Shown: piece by piece, positions 22,180 to 40,395 of the stretch | Numbering within the stretch: the first letter of the stretch is position 1 | How the letters are laid out: each line of letters opens with the position of its first letter | IMG/VR virus record: IMGVR_UViG_3300027759_006101 | Location: 1 to 64,000 of that record | Length of the DNA: 64,000 nucleotides | Direction: 5' to 3' (one strand) | Notes under the pieces: generated by a model | What the model saw: the letters and a program-made list of their open reading frames with translations, nothing else | What the model was told of the DNA's origin: nothing | Databases searched by the model: none | Made by a program: the position numbers and the translations under genes

Positions 22180-22763
22180 AAGAATTTATCGATTTTTATA
22201 ATACAGTAAAGTCTAATTACGTGCATATCTTAGAAGTTGATCCTGTAAAATTTATAATCAAAGAAATTACTTGGAAAGATGGCTTACTAATAGATGCCAA
22301 GTCTTTTAGAAAAAAAGATAATATAGTATACCAAAATACAGAGTTTGAAAAAAGAGAAATCTTGAATATAGCTATCTTGGGTGCTTTTGATACTCAGGAT
22401 AGTAAAATGTACTATCCTGAATTTAAAAGTTCATTAATCGATTTATTAGACCACACAATTGTTGAAAAACTTTGGGTCGAGTACCAAAAACATCTTTATC
22501 TTTCTGCAGATGAAGCAAACTTTTACTACATAGCAGCTAAAAAGTATTTCAATCCTAATGATCATGAAACATATCCAGTGCCACCAATAGTAGTTGAAAT
22601 TGACTATATGCTTAGAGGCTTGGTATCATTCAGCAAAGAAGAATTTTCAAATCTTAGTATGAAAGAATTTGAAACAATGCAACTTATTTTAGCTACTAAA
22701 AATGAATCTAAGCAAAAGTCTCTTGCTGATATTGATATTGATCTAGAGAAAGAACTTAAGTAA
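22176..22763 (+). CDS. Tail assembly chaperone-like protein
   Basis: DLLDHTIVEKLW and EFSNLSMKEFE segments resemble chaperone G/T-type motifs; start moved to the ATGA overlap at 22176. Confidence 0.45.
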   Translation: MKEFIDFYNTVKSNYVHILEVDPVKFIIKEITWKDGLLIDAKSFRKKDNIVYQNTEFEKREILNIAILGAFDTQDSKMYYPEFKSSLIDLLDHTIVEKLWVEYQKHLYLSADEANFYYIAAKKYFNPNDHETYPVPPIVVEIDYMLRGLVSFSKEEFSNLSMKEFETMQLILATKNESKQKSLADIDIDLEKELK

Positions 22764-23549
22764 ATCAGAACTTTCTTCTTTACGAATTTTATCAGCCACA
22801 GGAGTTCTATCCCATTGGTGAAAAACGTAATACTCTTCATCATTAGTACTTAGTACTTTCTTGTCATTATATTTGACTTGAACATTGTTTCTCTTGATAG
22901 CTTCTCCAGTTGCGCAAAAATTATCAACGTTTGGATTTGTAATTAATACTTTTGGATTCATAGCATAATATTGAGACAAATACCCCATAACTTGTTGGTC
23001 CTGAACTAAATACTTAGCTACTCTGTTTGTATTAGAGAAAAGCATCAAACAATGATTTACAAAATGCTCAATTTTTCCAGCAAACATTCCACCACTTAGT
23101 ACTAAATTATCAAGATAAGATTCATTGTGTGATCTTAGCAATGGACGATATGAATTTTCCCACATACTATTGCAATCGTTTTCAAGAATTTTCATTCCTT
23201 CTGCAACAAGAAATAAATTGTATTGCGGTCTTGACATCATAAACTCAAATGGGTCTCTTTGAAAAATAACATCTCTCAAATCTGTATTCATAACATATTC
23301 AAATTGGTCTTGTTTGTCAGATAGCCAATCATAAAATGCCATATATCCAGTATATAAGTTTTCTTCAGTTTCAATAATATAATCAAAGTATTTTTTCAAT
23401 TTCTCAATATTGTAAGGGCTAACTGATTTTACAAAAATTGCTTTTTTGAATGACTTAAACTTTGAAATAGACTCTAAAAATAAATCACCATCTCTTGAGT
23501 CTAAGCATTTGTCTCCAAAAGAATAGTTTATAAGTAAATTTTTTTTCAT
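22743..23549 (-). CDS. GT-A-like glycosyltransferase
   Basis: TDLRDVIFQRDPF (DxxD), LSGGMFAG, DQQVMG, HQWDR; start moved to the ATGA overlap at 23549. Confidence 0.65.
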   Translation of the reverse strand: MKKNLLINYSFGDKCLDSRDGDLFLESISKFKSFKKAIFVKSVSPYNIEKLKKYFDYIIETEENLYTGYMAFYDWLSDKQDQFEYVMNTDLRDVIFQRDPFEFMMSRPQYNLFLVAEGMKILENDCNSMWENSYRPLLRSHNESYLDNLVLSGGMFAGKIEHFVNHCLMLFSNTNRVAKYLVQDQQVMGYLSQYYAMNPKVLITNPNVDNFCATGEAIKRNNVQVKYNDKKVLSTNDEEYYVFHQWDRTPVADKIRKEESSDLLKFFL

Positions 23550-24379
23550 AAGTTTGTCTCCAATTTGATTTTTTTGTAACACTCTTCTATACCAGAAATG
23601 AGTCCTTTGAGGGATATATTCATTTTGTGCAAATCATACTTGCCTATATATGAATTCTTAAGCTCAGTGTTATCAAGGTCTATTTCAACTTTATGTTTGT
23701 CTAAATTGTTGATAATCTGTGCAATATCATATAGGGTGTACTTTTGTTGATAACTGCAATTACAATCTTTTTGAGGATTTTCTGATTCTATGTAATGTTT
23801 GATAATTTGCATAAAATCATCAAAAAACATAAAGTCCATATATCTATTGTCAAAAACACTAATATTTTCATTATTGATATATCTTAAGATGTTGCCTTTA
23901 ATCATCCGTGTCTTGAGTTCATTGTAATTGAAGATATTGAATATTCTAATGTTGTAAAACTTATCACAAAAATATCCTGATTTTGCAATTAAGTTTTTGC
24001 TAATTCCATATGGATCAAGTGGAAGTGAAGATAAATAATTTGAACTTTCATTCATTTGAAAAGCTCTGTCTAATTCAGCTCCAGAACCAAAAGATATATA
24101 TTTACCATAATGTTTTTCATTTCTTAGAATATTGAAATGCATAGAAAGATTAGTGTGGACATATTCTGGTAAATCTTCTGATAATCTGCTGCCACCTTTT
24201 ATCGCAGTGTGAAATACTACGTCAAAATATTTATCTTTGAAAAAATTATCAACTTGTTCAGCATTTGTAACTTCTAAATTTTGTCTTGTAGTTAAGGTCA
24301 AGTTGTAATCGTTCTTTAAGTTTTCTGCAATGTTTGAAGCAATATATCCATTAGCCCCTGTAATCAAAATAGATTTCAT
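23546..24379 (-). CDS. NAD-dependent epimerase/reductase (extended SDR)
   Basis: ITGANGYIA, YGISK; start at the TAATG overlap. Confidence 0.85.
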   Translation of the reverse strand: MKSILITGANGYIASNIAENLKNDYNLTLTTRQNLEVTNAEQVDNFFKDKYFDVVFHTAIKGGSRLSEDLPEYVHTNLSMHFNILRNEKHYGKYISFGSGAELDRAFQMNESSNYLSSLPLDPYGISKNLIAKSGYFCDKFYNIRIFNIFNYNELKTRMIKGNILRYINNENISVFDNRYMDFMFFDDFMQIIKHYIESENPQKDCNCSYQQKYTLYDIAQIINNLDKHKVEIDLDNTELKNSYIGKYDLHKMNISLKGLISGIEECYKKIKLETNL

Positions 24380-26106
24380 TACCAGTTTTCCGACCAAGAA
24401 ATATTTTCAAGCAAGCCTGGAATAAAGTTTCCATTTTCATCTAAACGAGCAATTACTTTAGGTTCATGAACTTCGTCAGGATGAGTCATAACTTCACAAA
24501 TAGCAGGACCGTCTATTTGAAAAAATTGTTGTAACTTTTCATCTATTTCATCATTGTTATAAACTCTAATGAACGGAAGATTGTATACATCTGCAACTTT
24601 TTCATAATCAGGGAATGTAACTCCACTGTTCCTATCAGCTGCAACTAATCTACCATTGAAGAAAATATTTTGTGTAATCTTCATAGAGAGATATCCGTCG
24701 TTGTTAATAAGTAATATCTTTAATGGCAAATTATTGTGTCTAACTGTCTGAAGCTCGTGGACATTCAAGTGAAGACTTCCATCACCTTCCATACAAAGAA
24801 TATTATGGTGTGTCGCAGCTCCCACAGCACATGGCAATCCATATCCAAGCGGAGCACCACCAGTATTTGTTATTAATCTTTGCCCATCTTTAAGCTTACA
24901 TACTTGCATAGTTACAACATTTGCAGAACCATCACTGGTTACAATATGATAATCGGATGGAATGTGATTGTTGAGTTTTTCAACTAATGCATACACAGAA
25001 GCTACGTCTTTCATATTCCTGTGTCTGTCTAAAACTACAGGTGCCTTGAAAGTATCGCAATGCTTTAGCCATGAATTAGATGCTGGTGTGATATTTTTTG
25101 AATTTAATTCTTTTAAAAATTCTTTTGCATCAGCAAGAACTTTAATATTTGGGAAAATAGTTGGCTTGTCAAGTTCCGCTGCGTCAATATCTACAACAAT
25201 TCTTTTTGCATTTTTAGCAAAGTTTTTAAAATTGTATCCAATTTGTCTTACATACAATCTACTGCCAATAGAAAGCATCAAGTCACATTCATTTAGTAAC
25301 TTATTTGCACACATTTGAGCATGTGTCCCAAATCTTCCATAGTATGATTGGTAAGATTCATTTACTAAATCATTGCCATTTACAGCTGTAATTACTGGTA
25401 TTTGAGTTTTTTCTAAGAGAGCGAATAGTTCGTCTACTCCTCCACTCAACCTAATTCCATTACCTAATACAAACAATGGTTTTTGAGCAGAATTAATAGC
25501 TTCTACAACCCTGTCAATCAATTCTGAATCAATCTTCAATGGTTCGGGTATATCAAAACCCTCAAGCTCTTCAGGTTCAATTTGCACAGTTTGTACATCC
25601 AAAGGAATATCTACCCAAACTGGCCCTGGTCTCCCAGATGTAGCTAAATAACACGCCTTTTCAAGTTCATACCTAATTCTTAAAGGATCGTTGACTTGGA
25701 CAGCATATTTTGTCATCGTTTTGACAGTTTCAATAATATTGAATTCTTGGTCACCTAATTGCCTTAAGGGTAAACCTGTAAAATTAGTACTCATAGGTCT
25801 ATTGACTTGCCCACTAAGATTCAACACAGGAATAGAATCTAGCCAGCTGCATAAAGTACCTGTCAGGGCATTTGTGCCTCCAGGGCCAGATGTCAATAAA
25901 CAAACTCCAAGTTTGTTGTTCATTCTTGCGTAGCCTTCAGCAGCTAATGCAGAAGCTTGCTCGTGATGGTTTGCAATAAAATTTACACCTTCTGCATTTC
26001 CCAAAGAATCAAGCAAGTGCATACAACCCGCACCACATAATGTAAAAATTGTGTCTACATTATAAGTGTCTCTTAAAAACTTAATTACATAATCAGATAA
26101 CTTCAT
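24379..26106 (-). CDS. ThDP-dependent enzyme, acetolactate synthase-like/YerE-like carboligase
   Basis: HHEQASALAAEGYAR, TSGPGGTN, RPGPVWVDIP, EGDGSLHLN...NNDGY. Confidence 0.9.
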   Translation of the reverse strand: MKLSDYVIKFLRDTYNVDTIFTLCGAGCMHLLDSLGNAEGVNFIANHHEQASALAAEGYARMNNKLGVCLLTSGPGGTNALTGTLCSWLDSIPVLNLSGQVNRPMSTNFTGLPLRQLGDQEFNIIETVKTMTKYAVQVNDPLRIRYELEKACYLATSGRPGPVWVDIPLDVQTVQIEPEELEGFDIPEPLKIDSELIDRVVEAINSAQKPLFVLGNGIRLSGGVDELFALLEKTQIPVITAVNGNDLVNESYQSYYGRFGTHAQMCANKLLNECDLMLSIGSRLYVRQIGYNFKNFAKNAKRIVVDIDAAELDKPTIFPNIKVLADAKEFLKELNSKNITPASNSWLKHCDTFKAPVVLDRHRNMKDVASVYALVEKLNNHIPSDYHIVTSDGSANVVTMQVCKLKDGQRLITNTGGAPLGYGLPCAVGAATHHNILCMEGDGSLHLNVHELQTVRHNNLPLKILLINNDGYLSMKITQNIFFNGRLVAADRNSGVTFPDYEKVADVYNLPFIRVYNNDEIDEKLQQFFQIDGPAICEVMTHPDEVHEPKVIARLDENGNFIPGLLENISWSENW

Positions 26107-27127
26107 AAACGTTTTCCAGTGCCTCTTTAATTATAGAATAATCTTCAATTTTTTGAATTAATGGTTGGTTATCTTTAATTAGCACCATGTTAACACAGCC
26201 AGTATTTTTCTTATCTGACATGACACATTCCATAAGGCTTTCATAATCAAACCATTCTTGATTAAAAGATACTGTATTTTCTAGAAGTTTTTTGACAATA
26301 TTTAATGTTGCAGAATAATCTTTGTAATTGTAGTTATAAAATAGTTCACTTACCCTCAAGGCTACAAGACATCCAATTGCCACTGCATATCCATGCGATA
26401 ACTTGTACTTTGAGGTAATTTCTAAAGCATGACCAAATGTATGACCAAAGTTCAGAAATTTACGTTCTTTTTTATCAAACTCATCAATCTCTAAAACAGA
26501 AATTTTATAATTAAGACTTTCATAAATGTGATGCAGAACATTTTTATTTTCAGAAATCAAATCAATGACTTTTGATTCTTGAATTTTATTTCTTAAGATA
26601 TCAAACTTCATTAATTCGCCTAAACCACTACAAAAGTTTTCTTTACTTAAGCCATCAAGCCATTCTTCACAAATAAGAATTTCACACGGAGGATAAAATG
26701 TACCAAGAATATTTTTTCTTGACCCATAATTGATAGAAGTTTTACCACCAATACAACTATCAATTTGAGAAAGCAATGTTGTTGGAACTAAATAATATTC
26801 AATGCCTCTACAATAAACAGAAGCACAAAAGCCCACTGCATCTTGTAAAACTCCACCACCAATAACTACAAGCTTAGTTTGCGTATTGACTTTTTTTTCA
26901 GCAAATTTATCAAATATTTTTTCTAGACCACGCCATGATTTTAAGTCTTCATTTGTGTCTGTAACTATGAGATCACCTAATCCAAATTCAGGAAAACAGT
27001 GAGCAACATTTTTGTCAACTACTGCAAGATGATAATCTTCTCCAATGAGTTTATATATTTCGCTCAAGCTTACAAAATTTACAGAATAATCTTTGATTTT
27101 TGATTTGACATTTATTTGGCTGTACAT
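26093..27127 (-). CDS. 3-dehydroquinate synthase-like sugar-phosphate cyclase
   Basis: GGGVLQD, VPTTLLSQIDSCIGGKT, KNILGTF, LNFGHTFGHALE, HGYAVAIG. Confidence 0.9.
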   Translation of the reverse strand: MYSQINVKSKIKDYSVNFVSLSEIYKLIGEDYHLAVVDKNVAHCFPEFGLGDLIVTDTNEDLKSWRGLEKIFDKFAEKKVNTQTKLVVIGGGVLQDAVGFCASVYCRGIEYYLVPTTLLSQIDSCIGGKTSINYGSRKNILGTFYPPCEILICEEWLDGLSKENFCSGLGELMKFDILRNKIQESKVIDLISENKNVLHHIYESLNYKISVLEIDEFDKKERKFLNFGHTFGHALEITSKYKLSHGYAVAIGCLVALRVSELFYNYNYKDYSATLNIVKKLLENTVSFNQEWFDYESLMECVMSDKKNTGCVNMVLIKDNQPLIQKIEDYSIIKEALENVYEVI

Positions 27128-27750
27128 GAATAACCACCATCTATAACTATATTTTGTCCTGATATATATGAATTTTGCACTGTCAAAAAATATACTAAAT
27201 CTGCAACTTCTTTTGTATATCCCAATCTACCAAGTGGAATTTTACTTCTTAAATTCTTCAAATCTTCTTCTGTATTATTTTGAAAAGTCATATCAGTGAT
27301 GAAAAATCCAGGAGACACAGTATTTGCCAAAATATTATAAGTACCATATTCAGCAGTTATAGCTTTTGTAAGAGAGTGTAAGGCATTTTTACTAGCACTA
27401 TATGAGGATCTTCCAGGTTTTGCATAATCTACCCATACGCTTCCAATATTTACAACCCTGCCATAATTTTGTTTTTTCATATAAGGTAAGCAAAGTTTGA
27501 ATAATCTCAAAGGTGAGAAATAATTTACTGTCATCATTTCTTCATATTTCTCACCTTCAAATATAGAGTCTATTATGTTAATTCCAGCATTATTTATCAA
27601 GATATCAATTTTGTCTGGAATAAAAGAAAAGGCTTGAGATAAATCAAGTTCTTCACGAGTTGGAGCAATAACTTCGTGACCATTTTTTTTGAAAATTTCA
27701 GAAATATCACTGCCTATGCCTCTTGACCCACCAGTGATAAGTATTTTCAT
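27112..27750 (-). CDS. Classical SDR oxidoreductase (FabG-like)
   Basis: TGGSRGIG, INNAG, YSASK, NTVSPG, IVIDGG. Confidence 0.9.
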   Translation of the reverse strand: MKILITGGSRGIGSDISEIFKKNGHEVIAPTREELDLSQAFSFIPDKIDILINNAGINIIDSIFEGEKYEEMMTVNYFSPLRLFKLCLPYMKKQNYGRVVNIGSVWVDYAKPGRSSYSASKNALHSLTKAITAEYGTYNILANTVSPGFFITDMTFQNNTEEDLKNLRSKIPLGRLGYTKEVADLVYFLTVQNSYISGQNIVIDGGYSCTAK

Positions 27751-28547
27751 AGTTCTGAAGCAGCTTGATTGATCCTAAATTGTATCATTTTAATTCTATT
27801 TTCATCTTGCAGTGAAAGTTTCTGATACAACTCCATTTTGTTAGTAAGCCATTCATATTCAAACATTTGAGCTTTAAAAAGAGCTCTTGATAAATTTTTC
27901 AACGCAACAGATGGATCAAAAATTGCATATCTTGTTTCAAATTTGTCTAAAAGTTTTTGTGAATGTAGTTTTTTCAAAAAATCTAAAGACTCAATAGATA
28001 CAGCTCCGCCAATACAAGCCTTGGCACCTAATTTCTTTGTTCTTTCAAAAACGTCATGAGCAATTTGGTAAACTTCTTCAGAATTTACAAAAGTTCTATC
28101 CTTTTTCATAGAAGATACTAAGTCAACTCTTCCCAATGTAACACCATATAATGATTCTGCAGCTTTTTGAGAAAGAATTTTATCAATGTTTGCAACAGCT
28201 GTTTGTGTTTCTATATTTACGTTCAATTGCAATGAATTTACTACTTCTGATGGCAGATTATTATGAATGGCATTTATGAATTTAGTTAGCCCAAATTCAG
28301 ACTCAACCATTGGAGCCACTAAACCCTTAACTCCAATTACCATTGAATCTTTAATATCTCTAATTGCTTCTGGACCACCAATTTTTAATGTGACTTTTGT
28401 ATTAGATTGATTGCAAATTTCTTTCAACCTTAAGACTTCGTTAAAAGTTGCACCCTCATCTTCAAAACTTGTTTTAATCCCAACTAGCCCATAGTTTTCA
28501 ACTAAATCTGTAAGGATATTTACGCACTTGAATTCTCTGTTGTTCAT
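27747..28547 (-). CDS. HpcH/HpaI aldolase/citrate lyase-family protein
   Basis: GIKTSFEDEG, VAPMVES, VNIET, VTLGRVDL. Confidence 0.8.
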   Translation of the reverse strand: MNNREFKCVNILTDLVENYGLVGIKTSFEDEGATFNEVLRLKEICNQSNTKVTLKIGGPEAIRDIKDSMVIGVKGLVAPMVESEFGLTKFINAIHNNLPSEVVNSLQLNVNIETQTAVANIDKILSQKAAESLYGVTLGRVDLVSSMKKDRTFVNSEEVYQIAHDVFERTKKLGAKACIGGAVSIESLDFLKKLHSQKLLDKFETRYAIFDPSVALKNLSRALFKAQMFEYEWLTNKMELYQKLSLQDENRIKMIQFRINQAASEL

Positions 28548-28556
28548 AGTTTTATT

Positions 28557-29507
28557 TTACCAAATGAATTTATTTTTGTAATAATTGACTATGTTTAAAA
28601 TCTCATTGTCAAAATTTACTTGTGGAGACCAACCTAAATTTTTAAGTTTAGAATCATCAATTGCATATCTGACATCTTGCCCTGGTCTCATAACGTCATA
28701 AGAGATATAATCATCATAGTTTACAGAAGATTCAAAGTATGCATCTATAATTTTTTTAATTGTATCAATATTCGATTGTTCAAAACCTCCGGCTACATTG
28801 TAAATCTCATTAGACTTACCTTTCTCTATAATTGCAATTATTGCTGATGCAGTATCACTTGCATGTAACCAATTACGTATAGGAGTTCCGTGATTGTGTA
28901 ATGGGATTTTTCTTTTCAAAGTTAAAAACTTACAAGCTTTAGGGATAAGTTTTTCAACATATTGACCAATACCGTAATTGTTAGTTGGTCTGACAATATT
29001 GTAATTTAGATCGAAAGTTCTAGCCCAAGCCACAATTAACATATCTGCAGAAGCTTTAGTTGCAGAGTAAGGATTGCTTGGTTTCAATAAGTCAGTTTCT
29101 TTATGACTCCCATCAACCACATCTCCGTATACTTCGTCAGTGCTGAAGTGAATAAATCTTGGTATTACATATCCTTCTGTTTTGTAATTTTTAAGAAGCT
29201 CTAAAATATTGTGAACACCTGTAATGTTTGAGTGTAAAAAAACATCACTTTTACGTATTGAGTTATCTACGTGAGTTTCTGCAGCAGTATTTATAAAAAC
29301 ATCACAATCAACTAATCTTTTTATATCGCAAATATCAGTTTTCTCAAATTTGAATTTTGGATTACAGAAAAAATCATCCAAAACACTTACATCAGAAGCA
29401 TAAGTACAGCTATCGATGCCATAAACATACCAGCCTTTGTCTAAACAAGCCTTAGTAATATATCTGCCTATAAAACCTAAGCATCCAGTTATATAAACGA
29501 TTTTCAT
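28557..29507 (-). CDS. rmlB: NDP(dTDP)-glucose 4,6-dehydratase
   Basis: TGCLGFIG, AAETHVDNSI, STDEVYG, PYSATK, RPTNNYG, EKLIP, RPGQD.RYA. Confidence 0.9.
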   Translation of the reverse strand: MKIVYITGCLGFIGRYITKACLDKGWYVYGIDSCTYASDVSVLDDFFCNPKFKFEKTDICDIKRLVDCDVFINTAAETHVDNSIRKSDVFLHSNITGVHNILELLKNYKTEGYVIPRFIHFSTDEVYGDVVDGSHKETDLLKPSNPYSATKASADMLIVAWARTFDLNYNIVRPTNNYGIGQYVEKLIPKACKFLTLKRKIPLHNHGTPIRNWLHASDTASAIIAIIEKGKSNEIYNVAGGFEQSNIDTIKKIIDAYFESSVNYDDYISYDVMRPGQDVRYAIDDSKLKNLGWSPQVNFDNEILNIVNYYKNKFIW

Positions 29508-29514
29508 TTAAAAT

Positions 29515-29538
29515 ATTATACGTTATAAGCGGTATAAT
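29515..29538. promoter_or_regulatory. Back-to-back divergent GTATAAT -10 boxes forming an inverted repeat
   Basis: ATTATAC-N10-GTATAAT; 7 nt from the left-arm ATG (29507) and 6 nt from the right-arm ATG (29545). Confidence 0.7.
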
Positions 29539-29544
29539 AAGTTT

Positions 29545-29946
29545 ATGAATCGCAAATATCTCCCAACTCTTTCCGAATTGATTGATAGGCTTTCGATTGT
29601 TCAACTAAAAGAAGTTTTTATTTCAGAACATAAAGCCGAATATGCTAAAGAAATATCAGATATTCTCCATGATATTCAAGAACATATTGATGAAAATAAT
29701 GCAGAAATTACAGCTGAAGTAATCCGAGCAGTAGTTGTCTTGTCACAGATGAATTTGCATATTTGGCACAATGAAACAAATTACCGCAAGGGAATCAAGG
29801 ATGGAAATAATCTTGAATTGACTCACGGCTTGAATGGAATTAGAAACACGGCAAAAAATAAAATTCAAGAAGTAGTTGGTGGACGAAAAGACTACAAAAT
29901 TGACTGTTTAGCTGCTGATTTTAAGGACTGGGAGATAAGCTGGTGA
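29545..29946 (+). CDS. DUF6165-like all-alpha protein
   Basis: SELIDRLSIVQLK...NLHIWHNETNYR...NGIRNTAKNKI. Confidence 0.5.
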   Translation: MNRKYLPTLSELIDRLSIVQLKEVFISEHKAEYAKEISDILHDIQEHIDENNAEITAEVIRAVVVLSQMNLHIWHNETNYRKGIKDGNNLELTHGLNGIRNTAKNKIQEVVGGRKDYKIDCLAADFKDWEISW

Positions 29947-33864: not shown

Positions 33865-33872
33865 GGATTTGT

Positions 33873-34826
33873 ATGAATTACTTTGAAAATAAAAAAATAG
33901 TTGTTACTGGAGGCAGTGGTTTTCTGGGAAGCAATTATATTGAGGGTTTACTCAAAAAAGGTGCAAGCGTCAAAACAAATACGCATAAGCGTTCTTTGCA
34001 AGTAAATGCTGAAAATCTCACGGTGCTTGAAAACTGTGATTTGACCCAATTAGATCATTGTATTGAATTAGTTGATGGGGCAGATTATGTAATTCATAGC
34101 GCAGGTAACATTGCACATCCTAGTACTGTAGCAACAGACATCCAAATATCTATTCAAAACATCAATGTTCTTGGAAATGTTTTAGATGCATGTAACAAAT
34201 GTTCAGTTAAAAAATTCTTAGACCTCAATAGTTCAACTGGATATCCTGATAGAAGATTACCAATTACAGAAGAAGAATTTTGGGAAGATGAGCCTTACGT
34301 TTCTTATTTTGGGTATGGATGGATGAGACGTTATAGAGAAAAGCTAATGGAGCATGTATCAAGATTCTCCAAAACCGAAATCTTAGTAACAAGAGGTACT
34401 GCGATTTTTGGCCCTTATGACAATTTTAACATTAAGACTTGCCATGTAGTACCAGCTCTGATTAATAGAGTCTTATCTGATGAAAATCCATTTATTGCTT
34501 GGGGTAGTCCAGATGTAGTAAGAGATTTTTTGTTTGTAGAGGATGTTGTAAACGCTTCTTTGCTTGTTCTTGAAAAAGGCGTACCTATGAGACCCTATAA
34601 TGTTGGGGCTGGCAAAGCAATTACTATCGGAGAAATTCTGGATGTCATATTGAAAACCACCAAAAAGTCACCAGAAATTATATGGGATAATTCTAAGCCT
34701 ACTACAATTCCTTTTAGAATGGTTAGCACAGAAAGAATTACAAATGAGTTGGGATTTTATCCAGAATACACATTTGAACAAGGCATTGAAAAAACTGTGG
34801 AATGGTACAAAAAAGTTTATAAATGA
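33873..34826 (+). CDS. Extended SDR, GDP-fucose synthase-like, YxxxR variant
   Basis: TGGSGFLG, YGWMR, HVVPALI, WGSPDVVRDF; start moved to ATG 33873 after a GAGG SD. Confidence 0.8.
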   Translation: MNYFENKKIVVTGGSGFLGSNYIEGLLKKGASVKTNTHKRSLQVNAENLTVLENCDLTQLDHCIELVDGADYVIHSAGNIAHPSTVATDIQISIQNINVLGNVLDACNKCSVKKFLDLNSSTGYPDRRLPITEEEFWEDEPYVSYFGYGWMRRYREKLMEHVSRFSKTEILVTRGTAIFGPYDNFNIKTCHVVPALINRVLSDENPFIAWGSPDVVRDFLFVEDVVNASLLVLEKGVPMRPYNVGAGKAITIGEILDVILKTTKKSPEIIWDNSKPTTIPFRMVSTERITNELGFYPEYTFEQGIEKTVEWYKKVYK

Positions 34827-35521
34827 TGAAGCAATTTTTAGTAACTGGAGTATCTGGAGGTTTGGGTAAATATTTATTTGATAATTTACCTGATTGCTCT
34901 GGGCTGCACAGAACAAATTTTGATGAAGTAAGTTCAGAATCTTACGATACTATAATTCACTGTGCCTACAATAAAGAAAATATAATTACTGATTACAAGC
35001 AGTATATTGAAGATAATATTTTTTTATTGCAAAAAGTTAAAAAAATTAAACATAAAAAATTTGTTTATATATCATCAATTGATGTTTATAATGAGCAGAA
35101 AAACAATTACTCATTATTTAAAATGTTTGCTGAATCTCTCTTAAATAGTGATGACTTAATTTTACGTCTTTCTTGTTTATTAGGTAAAACTTCAAAACCA
35201 AATCACGTTTCTAAAATAATTTCTAATGTTGAATATATAAGTCTTGAAGAAAATTCAACTTTCAATTACACACTTTATTCTGAGCTTTTAAGTTTTTTTT
35301 CTGAAAACCTACATATCAATAAAATTGGAATTTGTGATTTTGTTGCAAATGATTTTGTGTACTTAAAAGATGTCATCAGCTTTGCTAAATCTGATACCAA
35401 GACTGGGCAATATTGCTATAACTCAAAATATCAATTTGTAAATCCTATATACTTAGATCATCCAGAGTATAATAAAAGCTCTTTAGAAAAATTAAATCTC
35501 TTTATTAACAATCCTGAGTAA
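34823..35521 (+). CDS. Short NAD-dependent epimerase/reductase (RmlD-like)
   Basis: TGVSGGLG, SSIDVY, YSLFK. Confidence 0.75.
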   Translation: MMKQFLVTGVSGGLGKYLFDNLPDCSGLHRTNFDEVSSESYDTIIHCAYNKENIITDYKQYIEDNIFLLQKVKKIKHKKFVYISSIDVYNEQKNNYSLFKMFAESLLNSDDLILRLSCLLGKTSKPNHVSKIISNVEYISLEENSTFNYTLYSELLSFFSENLHINKIGICDFVANDFVYLKDVISFAKSDTKTGQYCYNSKYQFVNPIYLDHPEYNKSSLEKLNLFINNPE

Positions 35522-35542: not shown

Positions 35543-35549
35543 GTATAAA
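35543..35549 (+). promoter_or_regulatory. Internal GTATAAA -10-like box 7 nt before ATG 35557
   Basis: CGGTATAAAT GTATTG ATG in a short intergenic gap. Confidence 0.45.
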
Positions 35550-35556
35550 TGTATTG

Positions 35557-36162
35557 ATGGAAAAATACTTACCTGAAGACCTAATTGCATTTGAAACAGA
35601 TATTGCAAATTGTTTCAATGAAGGCATTATCAAAGCACCCGTTCATTTATATGATGGCAATGAAGAACAAATCATAAAAGTTTTTCAAGATGTATCAGAA
35701 GATGATTGGGTTTTTTGCACTTGGCGTTCACATTATCAATGTTTGTTGAAAGGTGTGCCAAAAGAACAAGTGAAAACCGATATTTTAAATGGTAAATCTA
35801 TAACTTTATGCTATCCTGAACACAAAGTTTATTCTTCTGCTATTGTAACAGGAAGTATTCCAATTGCTACAGGGGTAGCTTTAGATATAAAGCGTAAAAA
35901 TCAAAATAACAAAGTATGGTGTTTTGTTGGAGATATGTCTTCTGAAACTGGTGTTTTTTTTGAAAACTGGAAATACGCAGTTAATCACGACTTACCAATT
36001 ACTTACGTAATTGAAGACAACAATAAATCAGTTTGTTCAGAAACTCGTAAGGTGTGGAATTGTGATAAGTTATTTTTTGAAAACGAAAATAGAAAAATAA
36101 TTTACTACTCATACACTTCTAAATATCCTCACGCTGGGGCTGGAAAAAGGATTCAATTTTAA
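35557..36162 (+). CDS. Minimal ThDP dehydrogenase E1-alpha-like subunit
   Basis: APVHL, TWRSHY, SAIVTG, GDMSSETG...EDNN; only ~200 aa. Confidence 0.85.
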   Translation: MEKYLPEDLIAFETDIANCFNEGIIKAPVHLYDGNEEQIIKVFQDVSEDDWVFCTWRSHYQCLLKGVPKEQVKTDILNGKSITLCYPEHKVYSSAIVTGSIPIATGVALDIKRKNQNNKVWCFVGDMSSETGVFFENWKYAVNHDLPITYVIEDNNKSVCSETRKVWNCDKLFFENENRKIIYYSYTSKYPHAGAGKRIQF

Positions 36163-36698
36163 TGAAATACTTTGATGAACTTAAAAGATCAATGGAATGG
36201 CTTGCTGAAAAAGAAGATACTTTATTTTTAGGCCAAGCTGTTGAGTATCCAGGCACAGCACTTACAAATACTATTGCAAATGTAGACAAAAGTAAGTTGC
36301 TAGAAATGCCAGTAAACGAAGAAATGCAAATGGGTATGACTTTAGGTATGGCGTTAAATGGTAGTGTTCCTGTATCTTTTTTCCCAAGATGGAATTTTCT
36401 TATATTAGCAGCCAATCAACTAGTAAATCACATCGATAAAATAAATATAATGTCAGATGGTGGATATAAGCCAAAAATCATTATCAGAACAGCTATAGGT
36501 TCACAAAGACCATTGCATCCTCAACACCAACATATTTCCGATTTTACTGCAGGTTTTAAGGCTCTTTGTGATTATGTTGATATAATTAGACTGGAAGAAC
36601 CACATCAAGTTTTTAATGCTTATAAATATGCCTATGAAAGAACAGATAATAGGCCAACATTATTGGTAGAATGGGGAGATTTTTACAGTGAAAAATAA
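36162..36698 (+). CDS. Minimal E1-beta/transketolase pyrimidine-binding subunit, no C-terminal domain
   Basis: FLGQAV, LEMPVNEEMQMG, NQLVN, HPQH; 178 aa. Confidence 0.85.
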   Translation: MKYFDELKRSMEWLAEKEDTLFLGQAVEYPGTALTNTIANVDKSKLLEMPVNEEMQMGMTLGMALNGSVPVSFFPRWNFLILAANQLVNHIDKINIMSDGGYKPKIIIRTAIGSQRPLHPQHQHISDFTAGFKALCDYVDIIRLEEPHQVFNAYKYAYERTDNRPTLLVEWGDFYSEK

Positions 36699-37863
36699 CT
36701 TATCTCATCCTCTTATGAATGACAATATTGATAGAGAAGATATTAATTCTGTAATTGATTTCTTGTCAGGTGAAAATATCCCCAAGCTTACAAATGGACC
36801 TAAAGTTGTTGAATTTGAAAACGCTTGGGGCAACTGGCTTGGAACTAAATATAATCTTTTTGTAAATTCAGGAGCTTCAGCAAATGAGTTAACTATGCTG
36901 GCAATTGCTCATATGATAGGTGAGGGAGAAATTATTGTCCCACCTCTTACTTGGATTTCTGACATTTCTTCAGTCTTATTCGCAGGGCATAAATTAGTTT
37001 TTGTGGATGTAAATTTCACAAATCTTTCTTTTGATATAGACAAGCTTAAAGCAGCAATTACACCAAACACTAAAGCAATTTTCTTAACTCATGTTCTTGG
37101 AATTAACGCTATCACAAAAGAACTCTTAGAAATTTGTGAAAAAAATAATATTCTGCTAATCGAAGATGTATGCGAATCTCACGGTACAACTTATCAAGGA
37201 TGCAAAGTTGGTAATTTTGGATTCGCAAGTAATTTTAGTTTTTATTTTGCACATCATATGTCAACAATTGAAGGTGGCATGATATCCACTAACAATTTTG
37301 AATTTTATCAAGTTTGTCGTGCATTAAGATCTCATGGTATGGTTAGAGAAATGACAAGTTCAGCTATGAAAAACTCTGTCATTGAAGCTAATCCAGACTT
37401 AAATCCTGATTTTATTTTCTTGCGTCCAGCTCATAATTTTAGAAGCACTGAAATCAATGCTGTCATTGGCTTATCACAGTTACCAAAGCTTGATGATAAA
37501 AATCAAGAAAGAATAGATAATTTTGATTTATTTATATCAAATTTAAATTCTGAAAAGTATCATATCGCAATTAACACTGAAGGCAATTGTAACTATGCTT
37601 TTATAGTGATTCTGAAAGAGCCAAATTTTGATAAACGAAATGCTCTGGAAAATAAACTTGCTGAAAATGGAATTGAGTTTAGAAGAGGACTGTCTGGTGG
37701 TGGCAATCAAATGAGACAGCCTTTTTTCAAATCTATTTATCAAGACTTTTCTGATTATCCAGTTATTGAGCATGTGCATAATTTTTCTTGGTATATTGGA
37801 AACTACCCAGGTCTGGAAAAAGAAAAGATTAATTTTTTACTTGAGATTTTAAATAGTGACTAA
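36688..37863 (+). CDS. DegT/DnrJ-family PMP-dependent 3-dehydratase (ColD-type)
   Basis: NSGASAN, IEDVCESHG, SFYFAHHMSTIEGG (His at the Schiff-base Lys position); no Fe-S Cys insertion. Confidence 0.85.
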   Translation: MKNNLSHPLMNDNIDREDINSVIDFLSGENIPKLTNGPKVVEFENAWGNWLGTKYNLFVNSGASANELTMLAIAHMIGEGEIIVPPLTWISDISSVLFAGHKLVFVDVNFTNLSFDIDKLKAAITPNTKAIFLTHVLGINAITKELLEICEKNNILLIEDVCESHGTTYQGCKVGNFGFASNFSFYFAHHMSTIEGGMISTNNFEFYQVCRALRSHGMVREMTSSAMKNSVIEANPDLNPDFIFLRPAHNFRSTEINAVIGLSQLPKLDDKNQERIDNFDLFISNLNSEKYHIAINTEGNCNYAFIVILKEPNFDKRNALENKLAENGIEFRRGLSGGGNQMRQPFFKSIYQDFSDYPVIEHVHNFSWYIGNYPGLEKEKINFLLEILNSD

Positions 37864-37865
37864 AA

Positions 37866-38636
37866 ATGAAAAAAAATTACAGTAATATTAAGATATTAGT
37901 CATAGGCGATTCTTGCACAGATGTTTTTGTGTATGGTAATGCCTTTAGATTAGCACCCGAAGGCCCAGTACCCGTATTCAATCCGGAATCTGAAAAACAG
38001 AATGGGGGAATGGCTTTAAATGTCAAGCATAATATCGAAGCAATTGGGGCAAATGCAACACTCTTGACTCAAAATGAAGACATATTCAAAACAAGATATG
38101 TTGACTCAAGAACAAATAGTCTTTTACTACGTGTAGATACTAATGACACAGCCACTAGAATAAGTAGAGATGTTATTCAAAGCATCACTAATAACACATA
38201 TTTAGATGTTGTATATGATGCAATCATTATTAGTGATTATTGCAAAGGTTTTTTGACAGAAGAAGATATTGATGAAATTTCACTTAATAATTTTAACATT
38301 TTTTTAGATACAAAAAAAATACTAGGTGATTGGTGCAAATACGTTACTTTTATAAAAATTAACTTTTCAGAGTTTGAGCGAACCAAACATACAATTGATA
38401 AATTAGATATTTCTGAAAAACTTATAATAACTAAGTCTGACGATGGTTGTGATTATCAAGGTGAAAATTTTCCAGTAGAAAAAGTGAATATCAAAGATGT
38501 TTCCGGAGCTGGTGATACATTTATTTCTGGGCTTGTATGTGAATATGTCAATTCTTATTCTGTAAAAAATGCGATATTGTTTGCTCAAGAATGTGCCACT
38601 AAAGTTGTTCAAAAAAAGGGAGTTTGTACTATATGA
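37866..38636 (+). CDS. PfkB-family sugar kinase, HldE/RfaE kinase domain only
   Basis: ILVIGD, LAPEGPVPV, GGMALNV, ISDYCKG, KDVSGAGDTF. Confidence 0.85.
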   Translation: MKKNYSNIKILVIGDSCTDVFVYGNAFRLAPEGPVPVFNPESEKQNGGMALNVKHNIEAIGANATLLTQNEDIFKTRYVDSRTNSLLLRVDTNDTATRISRDVIQSITNNTYLDVVYDAIIISDYCKGFLTEEDIDEISLNNFNIFLDTKKILGDWCKYVTFIKINFSEFERTKHTIDKLDISEKLIITKSDDGCDYQGENFPVEKVNIKDVSGAGDTFISGLVCEYVNSYSVKNAILFAQECATKVVQKKGVCTI

Positions 38637-38923
38637 TTATGAAAGAATATTACGCTATGTATTTGACACTTCACCAAAATAAAGTTTGTAGAAGACTTCA
38701 CGTACTTGGCCAAATCATGACTTTATTGTGGATTGCCGGATGTTTGAATTATGGCTATTTTTGGTTTTTGTTATTGACGCCATTTATTGTTTATCCTTTT
38801 GCTTGGAGCGGACACTATTTTTTTGAAAAGAATCAACCAGCAGCATTTAAAGATCCAGTCAAGGCTAAAATTAGTGATTGGATGATGCTTTTTGATATCT
38901 TAAGAGGAAAAATAGATTTTTAA
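38633..38923 (+). CDS. DUF962/Mpo1-like small membrane protein
   Basis: YLTLHQNKVCRRLHV...FAWSGHYFFEKNQPAAF...SDW; start at the ATGA overlap. Confidence 0.8.
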   Translation: MIMKEYYAMYLTLHQNKVCRRLHVLGQIMTLLWIAGCLNYGYFWFLLLTPFIVYPFAWSGHYFFEKNQPAAFKDPVKAKISDWMMLFDILRGKIDF

Positions 38924-39795
38924 TGTCTAACTTAGATTCTTTGATTAGAAACAATTTAGATTTGCCAATATCTGAAGATGTCTCCATTTATAAGGATGTT
39001 GAAAACAGAAAAAAGTTCACAAACGAAATATGTAAAGTTGTAAACACAGAAATTGATAAAACTTTGCATCCCTATGATAAAGATATACTTGAAGATATCA
39101 GAACTAATGGATACGCTATAGTTGAAAATTTTATATCTCCAGACGAAATAGAAGAACTCAAGAAGTACATAAGTAATTTTAAGGGTTACCAATTTCATAT
39201 TCCAAATAGATCCTTTAACAAAATACCTGAAAAATATTCATCTGATTTAAATTGGAATGTTTGCTCTTATAAAACAAATCACTTATTACATAATCCTTTT
39301 TTGCTCAAGCTAATGACAAAACCTGATATAATCTCTTTAGTTCAAGAGTATTTAGGCTGTCTTCCAATGATATCGGGCTTAAATATCTGGTGGAATAAAT
39401 ATACAGGACAAGAGTTTCACACTCAAAAGCTACACAGAGACTATGATGATTTCAAGTTCATAACTATGTTTATTTATCTCACTGATGTAAACACTAAGAA
39501 CGGTCCTCACGTTTACTATCCGAAGACCCATAATGGCGAAGAACCATCTACAGAACCAATCGAAATTACAGCAAAAGCAGGCACAGCAATTTTTGGTGAC
39601 ACATATGCTTTACACTATGGAAAACCCCTAGAAGAAGGCGAAAGGCTTATGTTTTGGACAAGATTCTCTTTGCATAAAAATAATAATTTTTACAGAGATG
39701 GGTCTGAAGAATATATTCAAGAGCCAAGTGTTTTTTTTGATGTTATTGATGACAGTGATATCAATAGACATGTTTTGAGAGCATTTACTAAATAA
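38923..39795 (+). CDS. PhyH-like Fe(II)/2-oxoglutarate dioxygenase
   Basis: NGYAIVENF, LHRDYD (HxD), YLTDV..KNGPH, GDTYALHYG. Confidence 0.8.
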   Translation: MSNLDSLIRNNLDLPISEDVSIYKDVENRKKFTNEICKVVNTEIDKTLHPYDKDILEDIRTNGYAIVENFISPDEIEELKKYISNFKGYQFHIPNRSFNKIPEKYSSDLNWNVCSYKTNHLLHNPFLLKLMTKPDIISLVQEYLGCLPMISGLNIWWNKYTGQEFHTQKLHRDYDDFKFITMFIYLTDVNTKNGPHVYYPKTHNGEEPSTEPIEITAKAGTAIFGDTYALHYGKPLEEGERLMFWTRFSLHKNNNFYRDGSEEYIQEPSVFFDVIDDSDINRHVLRAFTK

Positions 39796-39804
39796 GGAGA
39801 AAAT

Positions 39805-40395
39805 ATGGAAGAAATAGATTATCTTAAAGTTAATCCGGAATACGGAGACACAATGATGGATCTTGTTTTTGCTCAAAGAGTTAAAGAAATTATTGATGAG
39901 TATAAAATTACAACTTGGTTTGAAACTGGAGTTGATGTAGGAACAACAGCATTAACAGTTACAAAAATGGTCGAAAAGTGGATTGGTGTTGAAATTCGTG
40001 AAACTTCTTGTGAAAGAGTAGCTAAAAGATTTTCTGACAATAATGTAACTAATGTTGAAATAATTCAAGGAAACTCTCCTATCGTATTATTGAATAAAAT
40101 GCATACATTAGATGTTGACCATACTATATTTTTTCTGGATGCTCATTGGGGAGCCTACTGGCCACTATTAGATGAAATTGACACAATTTCAAGGGGTAAA
40201 GGAATACTCATAATGCACGATGTGCAAGTACCAGGTCACCCAGAACTAGGCTATGACCAATATGGTGGAAAAATATTAAATTACGATTATGTCAAGGATG
40301 CTCTCGCAAGATGGAGTCCTACGCACAGAATTGAATATAATTCTGAGACTAAGTATATTCATCCCAGGGGAATAATGTACGCATTTCCAAAATAA
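39805..40395 (+). CDS. Class I SAM-dependent methyltransferase-like protein
   Basis: WFETGVDVGTT, IIQGNSP, IFFLDAHW, ILIMHD. Confidence 0.75.
   Translation: MEEIDYLKVNPEYGDTMMDLVFAQRVKEIIDEYKITTWFETGVDVGTTALTVTKMVEKWIGVEIRETSCERVAKRFSDNNVTNVEIIQGNSPIVLLNKMHTLDVDHTIFFLDAHWGAYWPLLDEIDTISRGKGILIMHDVQVPGHPELGYDQYGGKILNYDYVKDALARWSPTHRIEYNSETKYIHPRGIMYAFPK

Follow-up and report, generated by a model that had tools for sequence, protein, structure and literature searches.

A hypervariable sugar-biosynthesis and glycosyltransferase island between the capsid and tail genes of phage-G-like jumbo phages

Introduction

Why would a tailed phage carry, between its capsid gene and its tail genes, a set of genes for making and attaching rare sugars? 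The locus lies in a 358-kb environmental phage related to Bacillus phage G and was examined within a 64-kb window (the whole stretch of DNA analysed, 64,000 nucleotides). A preliminary description, made from sequence alone, had read positions 22743-40395 as a self-contained, divergent, 21-gene rare-sugar biosynthesis and glycosylation cassette between the head and tail modules. It proposed that 3,6-dideoxy, branched and carbocyclic sugars are built into a virion glycan coat or modified DNA. Here, we show that the observation holds, whereas its interpretation is only partly supported. Moreover, we found that the locus is a replacement island whose content differs among related phages, a feature that had been missed.

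Results

The locus contains 21 tightly packed genes in two divergent arms

Seven genes lie on the minus strand (22743-29507) and 14 on the plus strand (29545-40395), packed tightly with overlapping stops and starts. Pfam and NCBIfam profile searches reproduced 19 of the proposed family assignments, and a third glycosyltransferase was supported by fold. The features of the locus and its flanks are as follows.

20854..22179 (+): tail-tube-fold protein (predicted), flank on the tail side. AlphaFold pLDDT 62, pTM 0.68; Foldseek matches T5 tail tip and tube, DT57C baseplate and P74-26 tube at 4e-9 to 9e-8.
22743..23549 (-): conserved predicted GT-A-fold glycosyltransferase (retaining-type, GT6/GT8-like), last gene of the left arm, which anchors the island next to the tail module. 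Homologues suggest that the real start is Met12, at 23549.
23546..24397 (-): extended SDR, RmlD/Fcl-like reductase or epimerase (PF01370, 1.5e-19). Homologues of 40-54% identity sit next to GT-A in relatives.
24379..26106 (-): YerE-like, three-domain, ALS-like ThDP carboligase, predicted to add a carbon branch to a keto-sugar (TPP_enzyme_N/M/C domains; GDG-X-NN motif at residue 441).
26093..27127 (-): DHQS-superfamily sugar-phosphate cyclase-like enzyme (PF01761 and PF24621; TIGR04425 at 4e-89, below its cutoff; PDB dehydroquinate synthases at 4e-42).
27112..27750 (-): classical SDR, FabG-like, 212 aa (adh_short, 7.8e-37; GxxxGxG and YxxxK motifs).
27747..28547 (-): HpcH/HpaI-type aldolase (PF03328, 1.1e-10).
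28557..29507 (-): RmlB-type NDP-hexose 4,6-dehydratase, first gene of the left arm (TIGR01181, 1.7e-88); 69-73% identical in most relatives.
29505..29547 (no strand): 37-bp divergent control region holding two back-to-back GTATAAT-N6/7-ATG boxes, one for each arm.
29545..29946 (+): 133-aa protein of unknown function, extremely conserved, first gene of the right arm.
29943..30956 (+): glycosyltransferase, GT-B-like (PF13524, 2.6e-12).
30953..31894 (+): extended SDR, GalE/4,6-dehydratase-like, part of the conserved island backbone (PF01370, 6e-33); 86-92% identical in relatives.
31894..32886 (+): second PF13524 glycosyltransferase (7.6e-12), with recombination breakpoints at its two ends.
32893..33864 (+): extended SDR, GDP-fucose-synthase-like (NF047922, 8e-42).
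33861..34826 (+): extended SDR, Fcl/RmlB-like (PF01370, 6.6e-42).
34823..35521 (+): short (232 aa) SDR-like protein, counted with the extended SDRs; only weak HMM hits, but Rossmann (GxxGxxG) and YxxxK motifs.
35543..36162 (+): internal GTATAAA-N7-ATG box plus a minimal E1alpha-like ThDP (PP-domain) subunit (PF00676, 1.8e-13; GDM-X-NN motif). The reading frame was listed from 35554, but the start is probably the ATG at 35557, which gene callers use.
36162..36698 (+): minimal E1beta-like (Pyr-domain) subunit (PF02779, 6e-9).
36688..37863 (+): ColD-type PMP-dependent NDP-4-keto-6-deoxyhexose 3-dehydratase, DegT/RfbH-like (DegT, 2.6e-68).
37866..38636 (+): PfkB kinase, closest to the heptose-7-phosphate 1-kinase domain (domain I) of RfaE/HldE (TIGR02198, 4e-35, below its cutoff).
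38624..38923 (+): Mpo1-like (DUF962) small protein with a hydrophobic core, role unknown (PF06127, 2.4e-28); present in 15 of 29 relatives' islands.
38923..39795 (+): PhyH-family Fe(II)/2OG oxygenase (PF05721, 2.9e-11).
39805..40395 (+): small class-I SAM methyltransferase (weak: PF02390, 1.8e-5).
40394..40430 (no strand): bidirectional intrinsic terminator (A-run, 9-bp stem, 5-nt loop, T-run), shared by the right arm and the capsid gene.
40446..41300 (-): major capsid protein, flank on the head side (phrog_2522, 4.8e-68).

The GT-A gene has no Pfam, PHROG or PDB sequence hit. However, the family, of about 268 aa, has invariant D90 and D93, and its AlphaFold model (pLDDT 93) matches BoGT6a, glycogenin and UGGT at E about 1e-8 in Foldseek searches, as well as viral GT-A proteins with TM up to 0.8. 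One assignment was not reproduced. The 133-aa product of gene 29545, described as DUF6165-like, has no DUF6165 hit, and its only hit is DUF4254 at E 0.07. It has more than 8000 homologues, of which the top 120 are all at least 89% identical and carry no Pfam domain.

The locus belongs to a phage and is not an assembly chimera

The major capsid protein is 47.5% identical to gp27 of Bacillus phage G. Portal, protease and terminase lie on one side of the cassette and the tail-tube-fold protein lies on the other, confirming the proposed position between head and tail modules.

Evidence that the segment is a chimeric bacterial contig had been named beforehand as grounds for rejecting the reading. 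The gene families are typically bacterial, and no megablast match to any deposited phage was found. Nevertheless, the same 21-gene layout occurs at 100% identity in IMG 3300027974 and 3300009184, so that identical joins are present in three independent metagenome assemblies, and a collinear strain with the same 21 genes, at 93.3% nucleotide identity, was found in ENA ERZ27257036. The G+C content is about 31%, like the flanks, and the best cellular match to the ColD-like protein among 185,579 species genomes is only 34% identical. In addition, dozens of related phage contigs have islands at the same site.

Against the 93%-identical strain, 20 of the 21 genes are under strong purifying selection, with dN/dS of 0.00-0.16 and a pooled value of 0.072, similar to the tail flank at 0.02-0.04. 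Gene 29545 shows no amino-acid change at pS 0.21. Therefore, an artefact, either a mis-joined bacterial fragment or a decaying recent capture, is effectively refuted.

The site is a replacement island

Synteny in related phages had been suggested as a check on the cassette, and this comparison gave the main new result. Between the capsid gene and the conserved GT-A gene, relatives carry about 75 bp (in the related phage L019), 5.6, 6.2, 7.35, 7.4, 11.7, 16.3, 20.0, 21.6, 22.6 and 22.7 kb, against 16.9 kb in the window, as calculated from contig coordinates. A total of 257 island ORFs from 29 relatives fall into about 110 clusters, with more than 70 Pfam families.

The breakpoints are sharp. 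Identity of about 91-92% through the left arm stops at window position 31919 in the relatives L125-127 and at 32868 in the relative L128, and a different right arm follows. In the relative L031, the island genes are 75-92% identical while its core genes are 50-70% identical. The GT-A gene is present next to the tail genes in most relatives, including L019, which has no other island gene and in which GT-A sits directly after the capsid gene.

The enzymes support 3,6-dideoxy branched sugars, but the cassette is not self-contained

3-Deoxygenation is supported. The DegT-like protein matches ColD at 1.4e-44 against 1e-32 for E1, and has His where aminotransferases have Lys. This His is aligned to ColD His188, the position that differs in the ColD variant entries 3b8x (Asn) and 2r0t (Lys). 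Branching is also supported, since the best solved relative of the ThDP enzyme is the YerE-like JanthE (8rph) at 1.1e-112, against 1e-68 for acetolactate synthases. In contrast, the carbocyclic claim rests on a DHQS-superfamily match alone and is supported only at the family level. The substrate nucleotide and the hexose or heptose identity are unknown, and all equivalog-level HMM scores are below cutoff.

The claim that the cassette is self-contained is not supported. No RmlA/GalU-type sugar-1-phosphate nucleotidyltransferase was found anywhere in the 64-kb window (best E 0.17 against an HMM built from relatives' enzymes); for the other 294 kb of the genome, the question was not settled. The reported absence of exporters was reproduced: no Wzx, Wzy, ABC or Gtr family was found, and no protein has a transmembrane-grade hydrophobic segment pattern.

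Promoter-like boxes are shared with morphogenesis genes

The GTATAAW-N6/7-ATG pattern occurs 6 times in the window against 0.97 expected, and every match ends on a start codon. Three copies lie in the cassette, two in the divergent control region and one before the E1alpha-like gene, and the others precede the portal, the gene before terminase, and a tail-operon gene. Promoter activity of the box was not tested. The capsid gene has its own terminator, and equivalent hairpins follow the capsid gene in L019 and in the relative L025, so island genes are not simply co-transcribed with it.

Discussion

Taken together, our data indicate that this locus is one allele of a hypervariable glycan island, which a widespread clade of phage-G-like jumbo phages keeps at a fixed site between the capsid gene's terminator and a conserved GT-A gene that abuts the tail module. 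The analysis itself demonstrates that the island encodes soluble nucleotide-sugar tailoring enzymes and three glycosyltransferases, that the genes are functional in the phage as judged by purifying selection, that the content is exchanged by recombination among related phages, and that the island starts from three promoter-like boxes of the type preceding the portal, terminase-side and tail operons; the pathway and its target are inferred.

In the inferred pathway, an NDP-hexose (or NDP-heptose) is supplied by the host or by phage genes outside the window, 4,6-dehydrated by the RmlB-like enzyme, and 3-deoxygenated by the ColD-type PMP enzyme. It would then be C-branched by the YerE-like ThDP enzyme and/or the minimal E1alpha/beta pair, reduced or epimerised by five to six SDRs, and further hydroxylated and methylated. 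The aldolase, FabG-like and DHQS-like trio would add chain extension or cyclisation of unknown kind.

What does the island modify? Virion glycosylation is the best reading, with a probability of about 0.5, but no glycan or acceptor has been directly observed. It is somewhat strengthened by the conserved GT-A gene next to the capsid gene and by the boxes shared with the portal operon. Additionally, GT-A resembles the protein-directed retaining glycosyltransferases glycogenin and UGGT, and no exporter or membrane protein is present. On the other hand, the nucleotide-activating enzyme is missing from the window, the capsid gene has its own terminator, and capsid Ser/Thr polymorphisms show no association with island type.

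The step from the lack of an exporter to a cytoplasmic acceptor, made in the preliminary description, is weak. Soluble phage glycosyltransferases, for example prophage TarP, can act on host wall precursors that the host then exports. Host envelope remodelling is therefore a possible but less likely alternative. Here, an unusual NDP-sugar would be added to lipid-linked O-antigen, capsule or teichoic-acid precursors and exported by the host's own flippase and ligase, for example to block superinfection or to stop progeny sticking to debris. The enzyme families are those of bacterial O-antigen and capsule loci, the missing nucleotidyltransferase implies dependence on another pathway for activation, comparable gene sets in cyanomyoviruses are interpreted this way (PMC12801897), and hypervariability is also typical of surface-polysaccharide loci (PMC4033161). 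However, no initiating polyprenyl-phosphate transferase, flippase, polymerase or ligase is present, and the fixed position between capsid and tail genes, the box shared with the portal operon and the conservation of GT-A where no sugar-synthesis genes are present (L019) argue against it.

It seems unlikely that the island makes a small molecule, such as a free or nucleotide-linked cyclitol or branched-sugar metabolite resembling an aminocyclitol-type natural product or a signalling or inhibitory compound. The DHQS-like cyclase, kinase, aldolase, ThDP enzymes and oxygenase would fit, and relatives' islands hold B12-radical SAM, NeuB, RuBisCO-large-like, ketopantoate hydroxymethyltransferase, and HMGL-like plus acetaldehyde dehydrogenase genes. 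Yet there are three glycosyltransferases in the window and one to three in nearly every allele, the backbone of RmlB, ColD and Fcl-like SDRs is classic NDP-sugar chemistry, and no transporter or resistance gene is present.

DNA hypermodification, in which hydroxymethylated bases are glycosylated to evade restriction after the methyltransferase and 2OG oxygenase prepare the base, is still less likely. The adjacent methyltransferase and oxygenase genes at 38923-40395 loosely recall the methyltransferase plus 5mYOX plus glycosyltransferase systems described for phages (bioRxiv 10.1101/2023.12.21.572611). However, the oxygenase is PhyH-type, not TET/JBP, and the methyltransferase is a small TrmB/RlmD-like class-I enzyme with no DNA C5-methyltransferase match. 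Both genes are variable accessories absent from most relatives, GT-A resembles protein- or glycan-directed retaining enzymes, and the location is in the morphogenesis region.

The suggestion that such complexity is unusual in a tailed phage was overstated, since tailed phages with about 22 carbohydrate genes have been described, for example the cyanomyoviruses S-SCSM2R and P-SSM2 (PMC12801897). These sets, including that of S-SCSM1, contain many glycosyltransferases and NDP-sugar epimerases of untested function. No ColD-type, YerE-like/E1alpha-beta or DHQS-like enzyme is listed among the genes described there, and no allelic replacement was described, in the passages we consulted.

Virion glycosylation has a precedent in mycobacteriophages, where glycosyltransferase (and methyltransferase) genes are embedded in the structural-gene region and glycans go onto capsid and tail-tube subunits in the cytoplasm (Freeman et al. 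2023, cited in PMC12619734). The capsid protein here belongs to the same PHROG (phrog_2522) as many actinophage capsids. The mycobacteriophage cassettes are a few transferases using host sugar nucleotides; this island, where glycosylation is unproven, adds about 17 sugar-tailoring enzymes, is up to 22.7 kb long and is swapped between related phages. Megavirinae giant viruses, which infect eukaryotes, also encode their own pathways for rare, bacterial-like sugars and their own glycosyltransferases, with clade-specific content and the virion surface as target (PMC10117803), and the GT-A model matches giant-virus GT-A proteins. Different sugars are reported for those viruses, and the variation here is at strain to genus scale with clear recombination breakpoints.

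A split E1-like ThDP pair next to deoxysugar genes also occurs in antibiotic deoxysugar pathways, as with the two-carbon branching enzymes AviB1/AviB2. The subunits here are much shorter (202 and 178 aa, PP and Pyr domains only), although no sequence comparison to those enzymes was run.

The chemistry is that of bacterial O-antigen loci for colitose (ColD/ColC) and yersiniose (YerE/YerF): a 4,6-dehydratase, a PMP-dependent 3-dehydratase with His in place of Lys, Fcl-like reductases and a YerE-like ThDP carboligase. The island lacks a nucleotidyltransferase, initiating transferase, Wzx/Wzy and ABC exporter, sits in a virus between head and tail genes, and carries a second ThDP system and a DHQS-like, aldolase and SDR trio that those loci do not have. 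Replacement between conserved flanks is shared as well, so that related phages hold different gene sets, or almost none, at the same spot, much as bacteria swap O-antigen loci. If the main reading is correct, the glycosyltransferases would attach the product to virion proteins (capsid, decoration and/or tail tube) in the cytoplasm during assembly, giving each phage strain its own surface glycan type.

Genomic context of the island

The window is the first 64 kb of IMGVR_UViG_3300027759_006101, a 358,269-bp viral contig, which it matches at 100% identity over the same coordinates. The genes flanking the sugar cassette in the 64-kb window are those of a phage, and the features referred to below are as follows.

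1-2000: contig start, AT-rich (G+C 0.246), with only short ORFs
5491-22763 (+): long tail-side operon
8440-8988 (+): double zinc-ribbon protein (PF12773, 1.7e-9) inside that operon, behind one of the GTATAAT boxes
10986-15683 (+): weak tail-fibre match (7e-5) in the same operon
20854-22179 (+): 441-aa protein, predicted tail-tube fold
26093-27127 (-): DHQS-like protein
29545-29946 (+): 133-aa protein of unknown function
30953-31894 (+): extended SDR
38624-38923 (+): 99-aa Mpo1-like (DUF962) protein
40394-40430: bidirectional terminator
40446-41300 (-): major capsid protein (phrog_2522, 4.8e-68)
43855-47994 (-): 1379-aa protein with an N-terminal prohead-protease domain
48118-50499 (-): portal
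57846-59957 (-): large terminase

The capsid protein is 47.5% identical to gp27 of Bacillus phage G and is more distantly related to many actinophage capsids. The tail-side operon also gave a weak Mu gp36/head-tail adaptor match. The model of the 441-aa protein (pLDDT 62, pTM 0.68) matches duplicated tail-tube folds, namely T5 tail tip and tube, the DT57C baseplate and the P74-26 tube, at 4e-9 to 9e-8. Therefore, the placement of the cassette between the head and tail modules in the preliminary description is correct, although the tail side rests on fold evidence of moderate quality. In the 1379-aa protein, the prohead-protease-like domain covers only residues about 52-243, and the long remainder is unannotated. 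Pfam and PHROGs left most tail-side and head-side accessory proteins without annotation, and PDB sequence searches found nothing for a 1565-aa and an 817-aa protein. No tRNA genes are present in the window. The AT-rich contig start may be a terminal or regulatory region of the genome.

The cassette encodes sugar-tailoring enzymes and glycosyltransferases

The observation in the preliminary description holds: all 21 ORFs exist, 7 on the - strand and 14 on the + strand, and Pfam and NCBIfam reproduce the families proposed for 19 of them. The third proposed glycosyltransferase (GT-A, 22743-23549) is the last gene of the left arm. It has no HMM or PDB sequence match and belongs to a family of about 268 aa with invariant D90 and D93. 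Its model (pLDDT 93) matches retaining GT-A enzymes, namely bacterial GT6, glycogenin and UGGT, at about 1e-8, and also viral GT-A proteins with TM up to 0.8. By contrast, the assignment of the 133-aa gene as "DUF6165-like" was not reproduced, since a Pfam search gave no DUF6165 hit at E up to 1. This protein, at the centre of the island, is extraordinarily conserved and abundant: at least 8000 candidate homologues were found, the top 120 clusters are all at least 89% identical and carry no Pfam domain, and no amino-acid change is seen against a strain with pS 0.21. Its function is unknown and it may not be an enzyme. PDB sequence searches also found nothing for the PF13524 glycosyltransferase, and only a marginal EctD hit (E 0.058) for the PhyH-like protein.

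The DegT-family protein (PF01041, 2.6e-68) is a dehydratase and not an aminotransferase. It aligns best to ColD (2gms, 1.4e-44 over residues 32-388), and its His-His pair aligns to ColD His188, so that the catalytic Lys is replaced by His; the ColD variant entries 3b8x and 2r0t differ from wild type exactly at this column. We also considered the E1 subtype, which has a [2Fe-2S] site and a partner reductase (E3). The protein scores higher against ColD (156 bits) than against the Fe-S-dependent E1 (117 bits) and the cassette contains no ferredoxin-reductase-type gene, but the Cys motif was not inspected, and these observations leave the subtype undecided.

The 575-aa ThDP enzyme has three ThDP-enzyme domains (PF02776, PF00205 and PF02775) and an intact GDG-X-NN motif at residue 441. 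It is closer to the YerE-like carboligase JanthE (8rph, 1.1e-112, 381 bits) than to the best acetolactate synthase (1e-68, 236 bits); acyl transfer from a 2-oxoacid to an NDP-ketosugar was not assayed. The E1alpha/E1beta pair is minimal (202 and 178 aa) but keeps a ThDP-binding motif.

The DHQS-like protein has both the N- and C-terminal DHQS domains (PF01761, 6e-34; PF24621, 3e-27). However, it scores 299 against a cutoff of 400 for TIGR04425 and 244 against 305 for aroB, so that no specific carbocycle-forming reaction can be assigned and the "carbocyclic" sugars of the preliminary description are supported at superfamily level only. The RmlB-like and RfaE-kinase-like proteins likewise score below the curated cutoffs of specific equivalogs, which leaves substrate identity open. 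The Mpo1-like protein is one of the most conserved island genes, present in 15 of 29 relatives and always next to the PfkB kinase, but no role in sugar pathways is known to us.

The cassette was also described as self-contained, and this is not supported. An HMM built from the NTP_transferase proteins of relatives' islands found no sugar-1-phosphate nucleotidyltransferase in a six-frame translation of the whole window (best E 0.17). Some relatives carry HAD-nucleotidyltransferase fusions, GHMP kinases and RmlC-like epimerases in their islands. A scan for a nucleotidyltransferase elsewhere on the 358-kb contig returned more than 480 viral hits, and this contig was not among the best 80, which does not settle whether the other 294 kb supplies the activating enzyme. 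The reported absence of export functions was confirmed: we found no initiating phosphoglycosyl transferase, flippase, ABC exporter or polymerase family and no multi-transmembrane protein among the 21 products. The locus therefore lacks the defining components of Wzx/Wzy- or ABC-dependent surface polysaccharide loci.

The cassette is phage-resident and under purifying selection

A chimeric bacterial contig had been put forward in advance as a finding that would overturn the reading, but the same joins occur in other assemblies. A 45-kb contig from IMG 3300027974 is 100.000% identical over window 16614-51300, and an 80.5-kb contig from IMG 3300009184 is 100% identical over 19545-39946. A 73-kb ENA contig (ERZ27257036) is collinear at 93.3% nucleotide identity with all 21 genes. 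Against that strain, Nei-Gojobori dN/dS is 0.00-0.16 for 20 cassette genes, pooled 0.072 (pN 0.023, pS 0.258), and the adjacent tail genes give 0.02-0.04. The G+C of the cassette, about 0.31, matches the flanks, and the best cellular match to the ColD-like protein among species-representative genomes is 34% identical. An artefact is thus effectively excluded, although megablast of the cassette against deposited phages found no match.

The site is a replacement island

Comparison with related phages, also proposed beforehand as a test, revealed our main new finding. Eighty related viral contigs were retrieved with the capsid protein and 34 with the GT-A alignment; a single-sequence scan with the 441-aa tail protein had found only the same phage. 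In relatives whose capsid protein is 95-99% identical (portal 64-88%, so roughly genus-level), the space between the capsid gene and the GT-A gene, from contig coordinates, is about 75 bp (relative L019), then 5.6, 6.2, 7.35, 7.4, 11.7, 16.3, 16.9 (window), 20.0, 21.6, 22.6 and 22.7 kb. One relative (L025) has neither an island nor GT-A. Bacillus phage G has no sugar genes near its capsid gene, so the island is not ancestral to the G-like group. Among the relatives in which the capsid protein stays 95-99% identical and the portal is 64-88%, the neighbouring 217-aa (41333-41986) and 562-aa proteins are 44-90% identical; the capsid protein is unusually constrained, or is homogenised by recombination.

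The 257 island ORFs from 29 relatives form about 110 clusters at 40% identity or more. These cover DegT aminotransferases, RmlC-like epimerases, nucleotidyltransferases, methyltransferases, GT2 enzymes, B12-radical SAM enzymes, NeuB, GHMP kinases, aldolases, further ThDP enzymes, LAGLIDADG endonucleases and others. Unexpected families among the island genes of relatives L004-L049 include RuBisCO large-chain-like, NeuB, ketopantoate hydroxymethyltransferase, HMGL-like plus acetaldehyde dehydrogenase, DJ-1/PfpI and B12-radical SAM; the individual loci for some of these were not traced. LAGLIDADG homing-endonuclease genes sit immediately downstream of the capsid gene in several relatives' islands (10904-12115 of relative L005 and three other loci) and are a possible driver of recombination at this site.

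Within this variation, a backbone recurs. It consists of the divergent junction of the 133-aa gene plus SDR 30953 (82-93% identical) facing RmlB (69-73%); the block E1alpha/beta, ColD-like, PfkB and Mpo1-like (64-89%); and an SDR plus GT-A next to the tail genes. ThDP-dependent branching enzymes of one kind or another appear in most alleles examined. A comparison restricted to 10-kb flanks suggested that the DHQS, FabG and aldolase trio was unique to the window, but wider comparison ruled this out, because relatives L091-L093 have it at 82-95% identity.

Identity steps sharply between neighbouring genes. In L091 the FabG-like and DHQS-like genes are 94-95% identical, but the ThDP enzyme is 63% and GT-A 57%. 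In relative L031, island genes are 75-92% identical while core genes are 50-70%, which indicates exchange between lineages. In strain L124, otherwise about 98% identical at the protein level, the DHQS-like gene is only 77.7% identical and SDR 30953 is 91.4% (pS 0.5), indicating single-gene allelic replacement inside the island. At strain scale, contigs about 91-92% identical from the tail genes through the whole left arm lose collinearity at window 31919 (contigs L125-127) or 32868 (contig L128) and then continue with different right arms. One has DJ-1/PfpI, longer E1 subunits and a relocated PhyH; the other has a split transketolase, an RmlC-like gene, a B12-radical SAM gene and an extra glycosyltransferase. 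The locus thus shows the fixed site between conserved flanks, the non-homologous content and the abrupt identity breakpoints of replacement flexible genomic islands.

Regulatory signals

The right arm and the capsid gene end at a shared bidirectional terminator (40394-40430), and equivalent hairpins follow the capsid gene in L019 and L025. A sigma-70 promoter and terminator consensus scan of 22-41.5 kb was uninformative: it gave 105 promoter-like sites against 92.6 expected and missed the clear hairpin at 40.4 kb. In contrast, the pattern GTATAAW-N6/7-ATG occurs six times in the window (8427-8442, 29505-29521, 29532-29547, 35543-35559, 50497-50513 and 60635-60650) against 0.97 expected, and none of 100 shuffles reached six. 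Every match ends on the start codon of a gene that follows an intergenic gap, and none of these genes has a Shine-Dalgarno motif. The six genes are RmlB (left arm), the 133-aa gene (right arm), E1alpha (internal), the portal gene, the gene upstream of terminase, and a tail-operon gene. In L019 the same box precedes the GT-A gene. These data suggest that the island is expressed from the same promoter class as the morphogenesis operons, possibly as leaderless or near-leaderless transcripts, which could hint at the host type; the function of the box is inferred from sequence alone.

Interpretation

Taken together, our data establish a functional, phage-resident, recombining sugar-tailoring and glycosyltransferase island at a fixed site in the morphogenesis region, whereas its product and its target are inferences. 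The interpretation in the preliminary description, a virion glycan coat or modified DNA built from 3,6-dideoxy, branched and carbocyclic sugars by a self-contained pathway, is only partly supported. The inferred product is a 3,6-dideoxy, carbon-branched NDP-sugar of the colitose/yersiniose kind, further reduced, hydroxylated and methylated. The aldolase, SDR and DHQS-like trio, the PfkB kinase and the Mpo1-like protein are not placed in this scheme.

We infer that the target is virion proteins, with a probability of about 0.5. The GT-A gene lies between the capsid and tail genes in the window and in relatives, as expected of phage virion-glycosylation systems, and it is retained beside the capsid gene even in the minimal-site phage L019. 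The GT-A model also resembles protein-directed retaining glycosyltransferases, the promoter-like boxes are shared with the morphogenesis operons, and there is precedent in mycobacteriophages (PMC12619734); no glycan on a capsid or tail protein was measured here. Polymorphic Ser/Thr sites of the capsid protein, tested as candidate glycosites, show no association with island type. The main rival, which we consider less probable, is host-envelope remodelling: a soluble glycosyltransferase could act on host precursors, and the cyanophage literature reads similar genes that way (PMC12801897). A small-molecule product is unlikely, and DNA hypermodification slightly more so.

Virus-encoded glycosylation is established for giant viruses and a few mycobacteriophages, and large carbohydrate gene sets are known in cyanophages, although their purpose in tailed phages is mostly unknown. 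Three things appear new here, in that literature searches found no description of them or of this island or lineage: the O-antigen-like allelic replacement at a fixed head-tail junction in an abundant jumbo-phage clade, the natural empty-site and GT-only relatives, and the recurrent ThDP-branching and ColD-type chemistry. The locus offers a clean natural experiment, wherein closely related, environmentally abundant phages carry no island, a lone glycosyltransferase, or 6-23 kb alleles with different chemistry at one fixed site beside the capsid gene, with breakpoints that can be mapped to within a gene. This makes such questions directly testable. It also points to compact enzymes of interest for rare-sugar biocatalysis, namely a ColD-type dehydratase, YerE-like and minimal E1alpha/beta carboligases, and a DHQS-like enzyme.

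More tentatively, we hypothesize that these abundant jumbo phages have "serotypes", wherein a recombination-driven, O-antigen-like replacement island gives each strain a different coat of rare 3,6-dideoxy, ThDP-branched (and possibly cyclitol-containing) sugars on capsid and/or tail. This would imply that something in the environment selects on virion surface glycans, such as host receptors or defence sensors that recognise capsid proteins, grazers, or lectin-like traps. It would also make tailed-phage virions a new reservoir of unusual carbohydrate chemistry.
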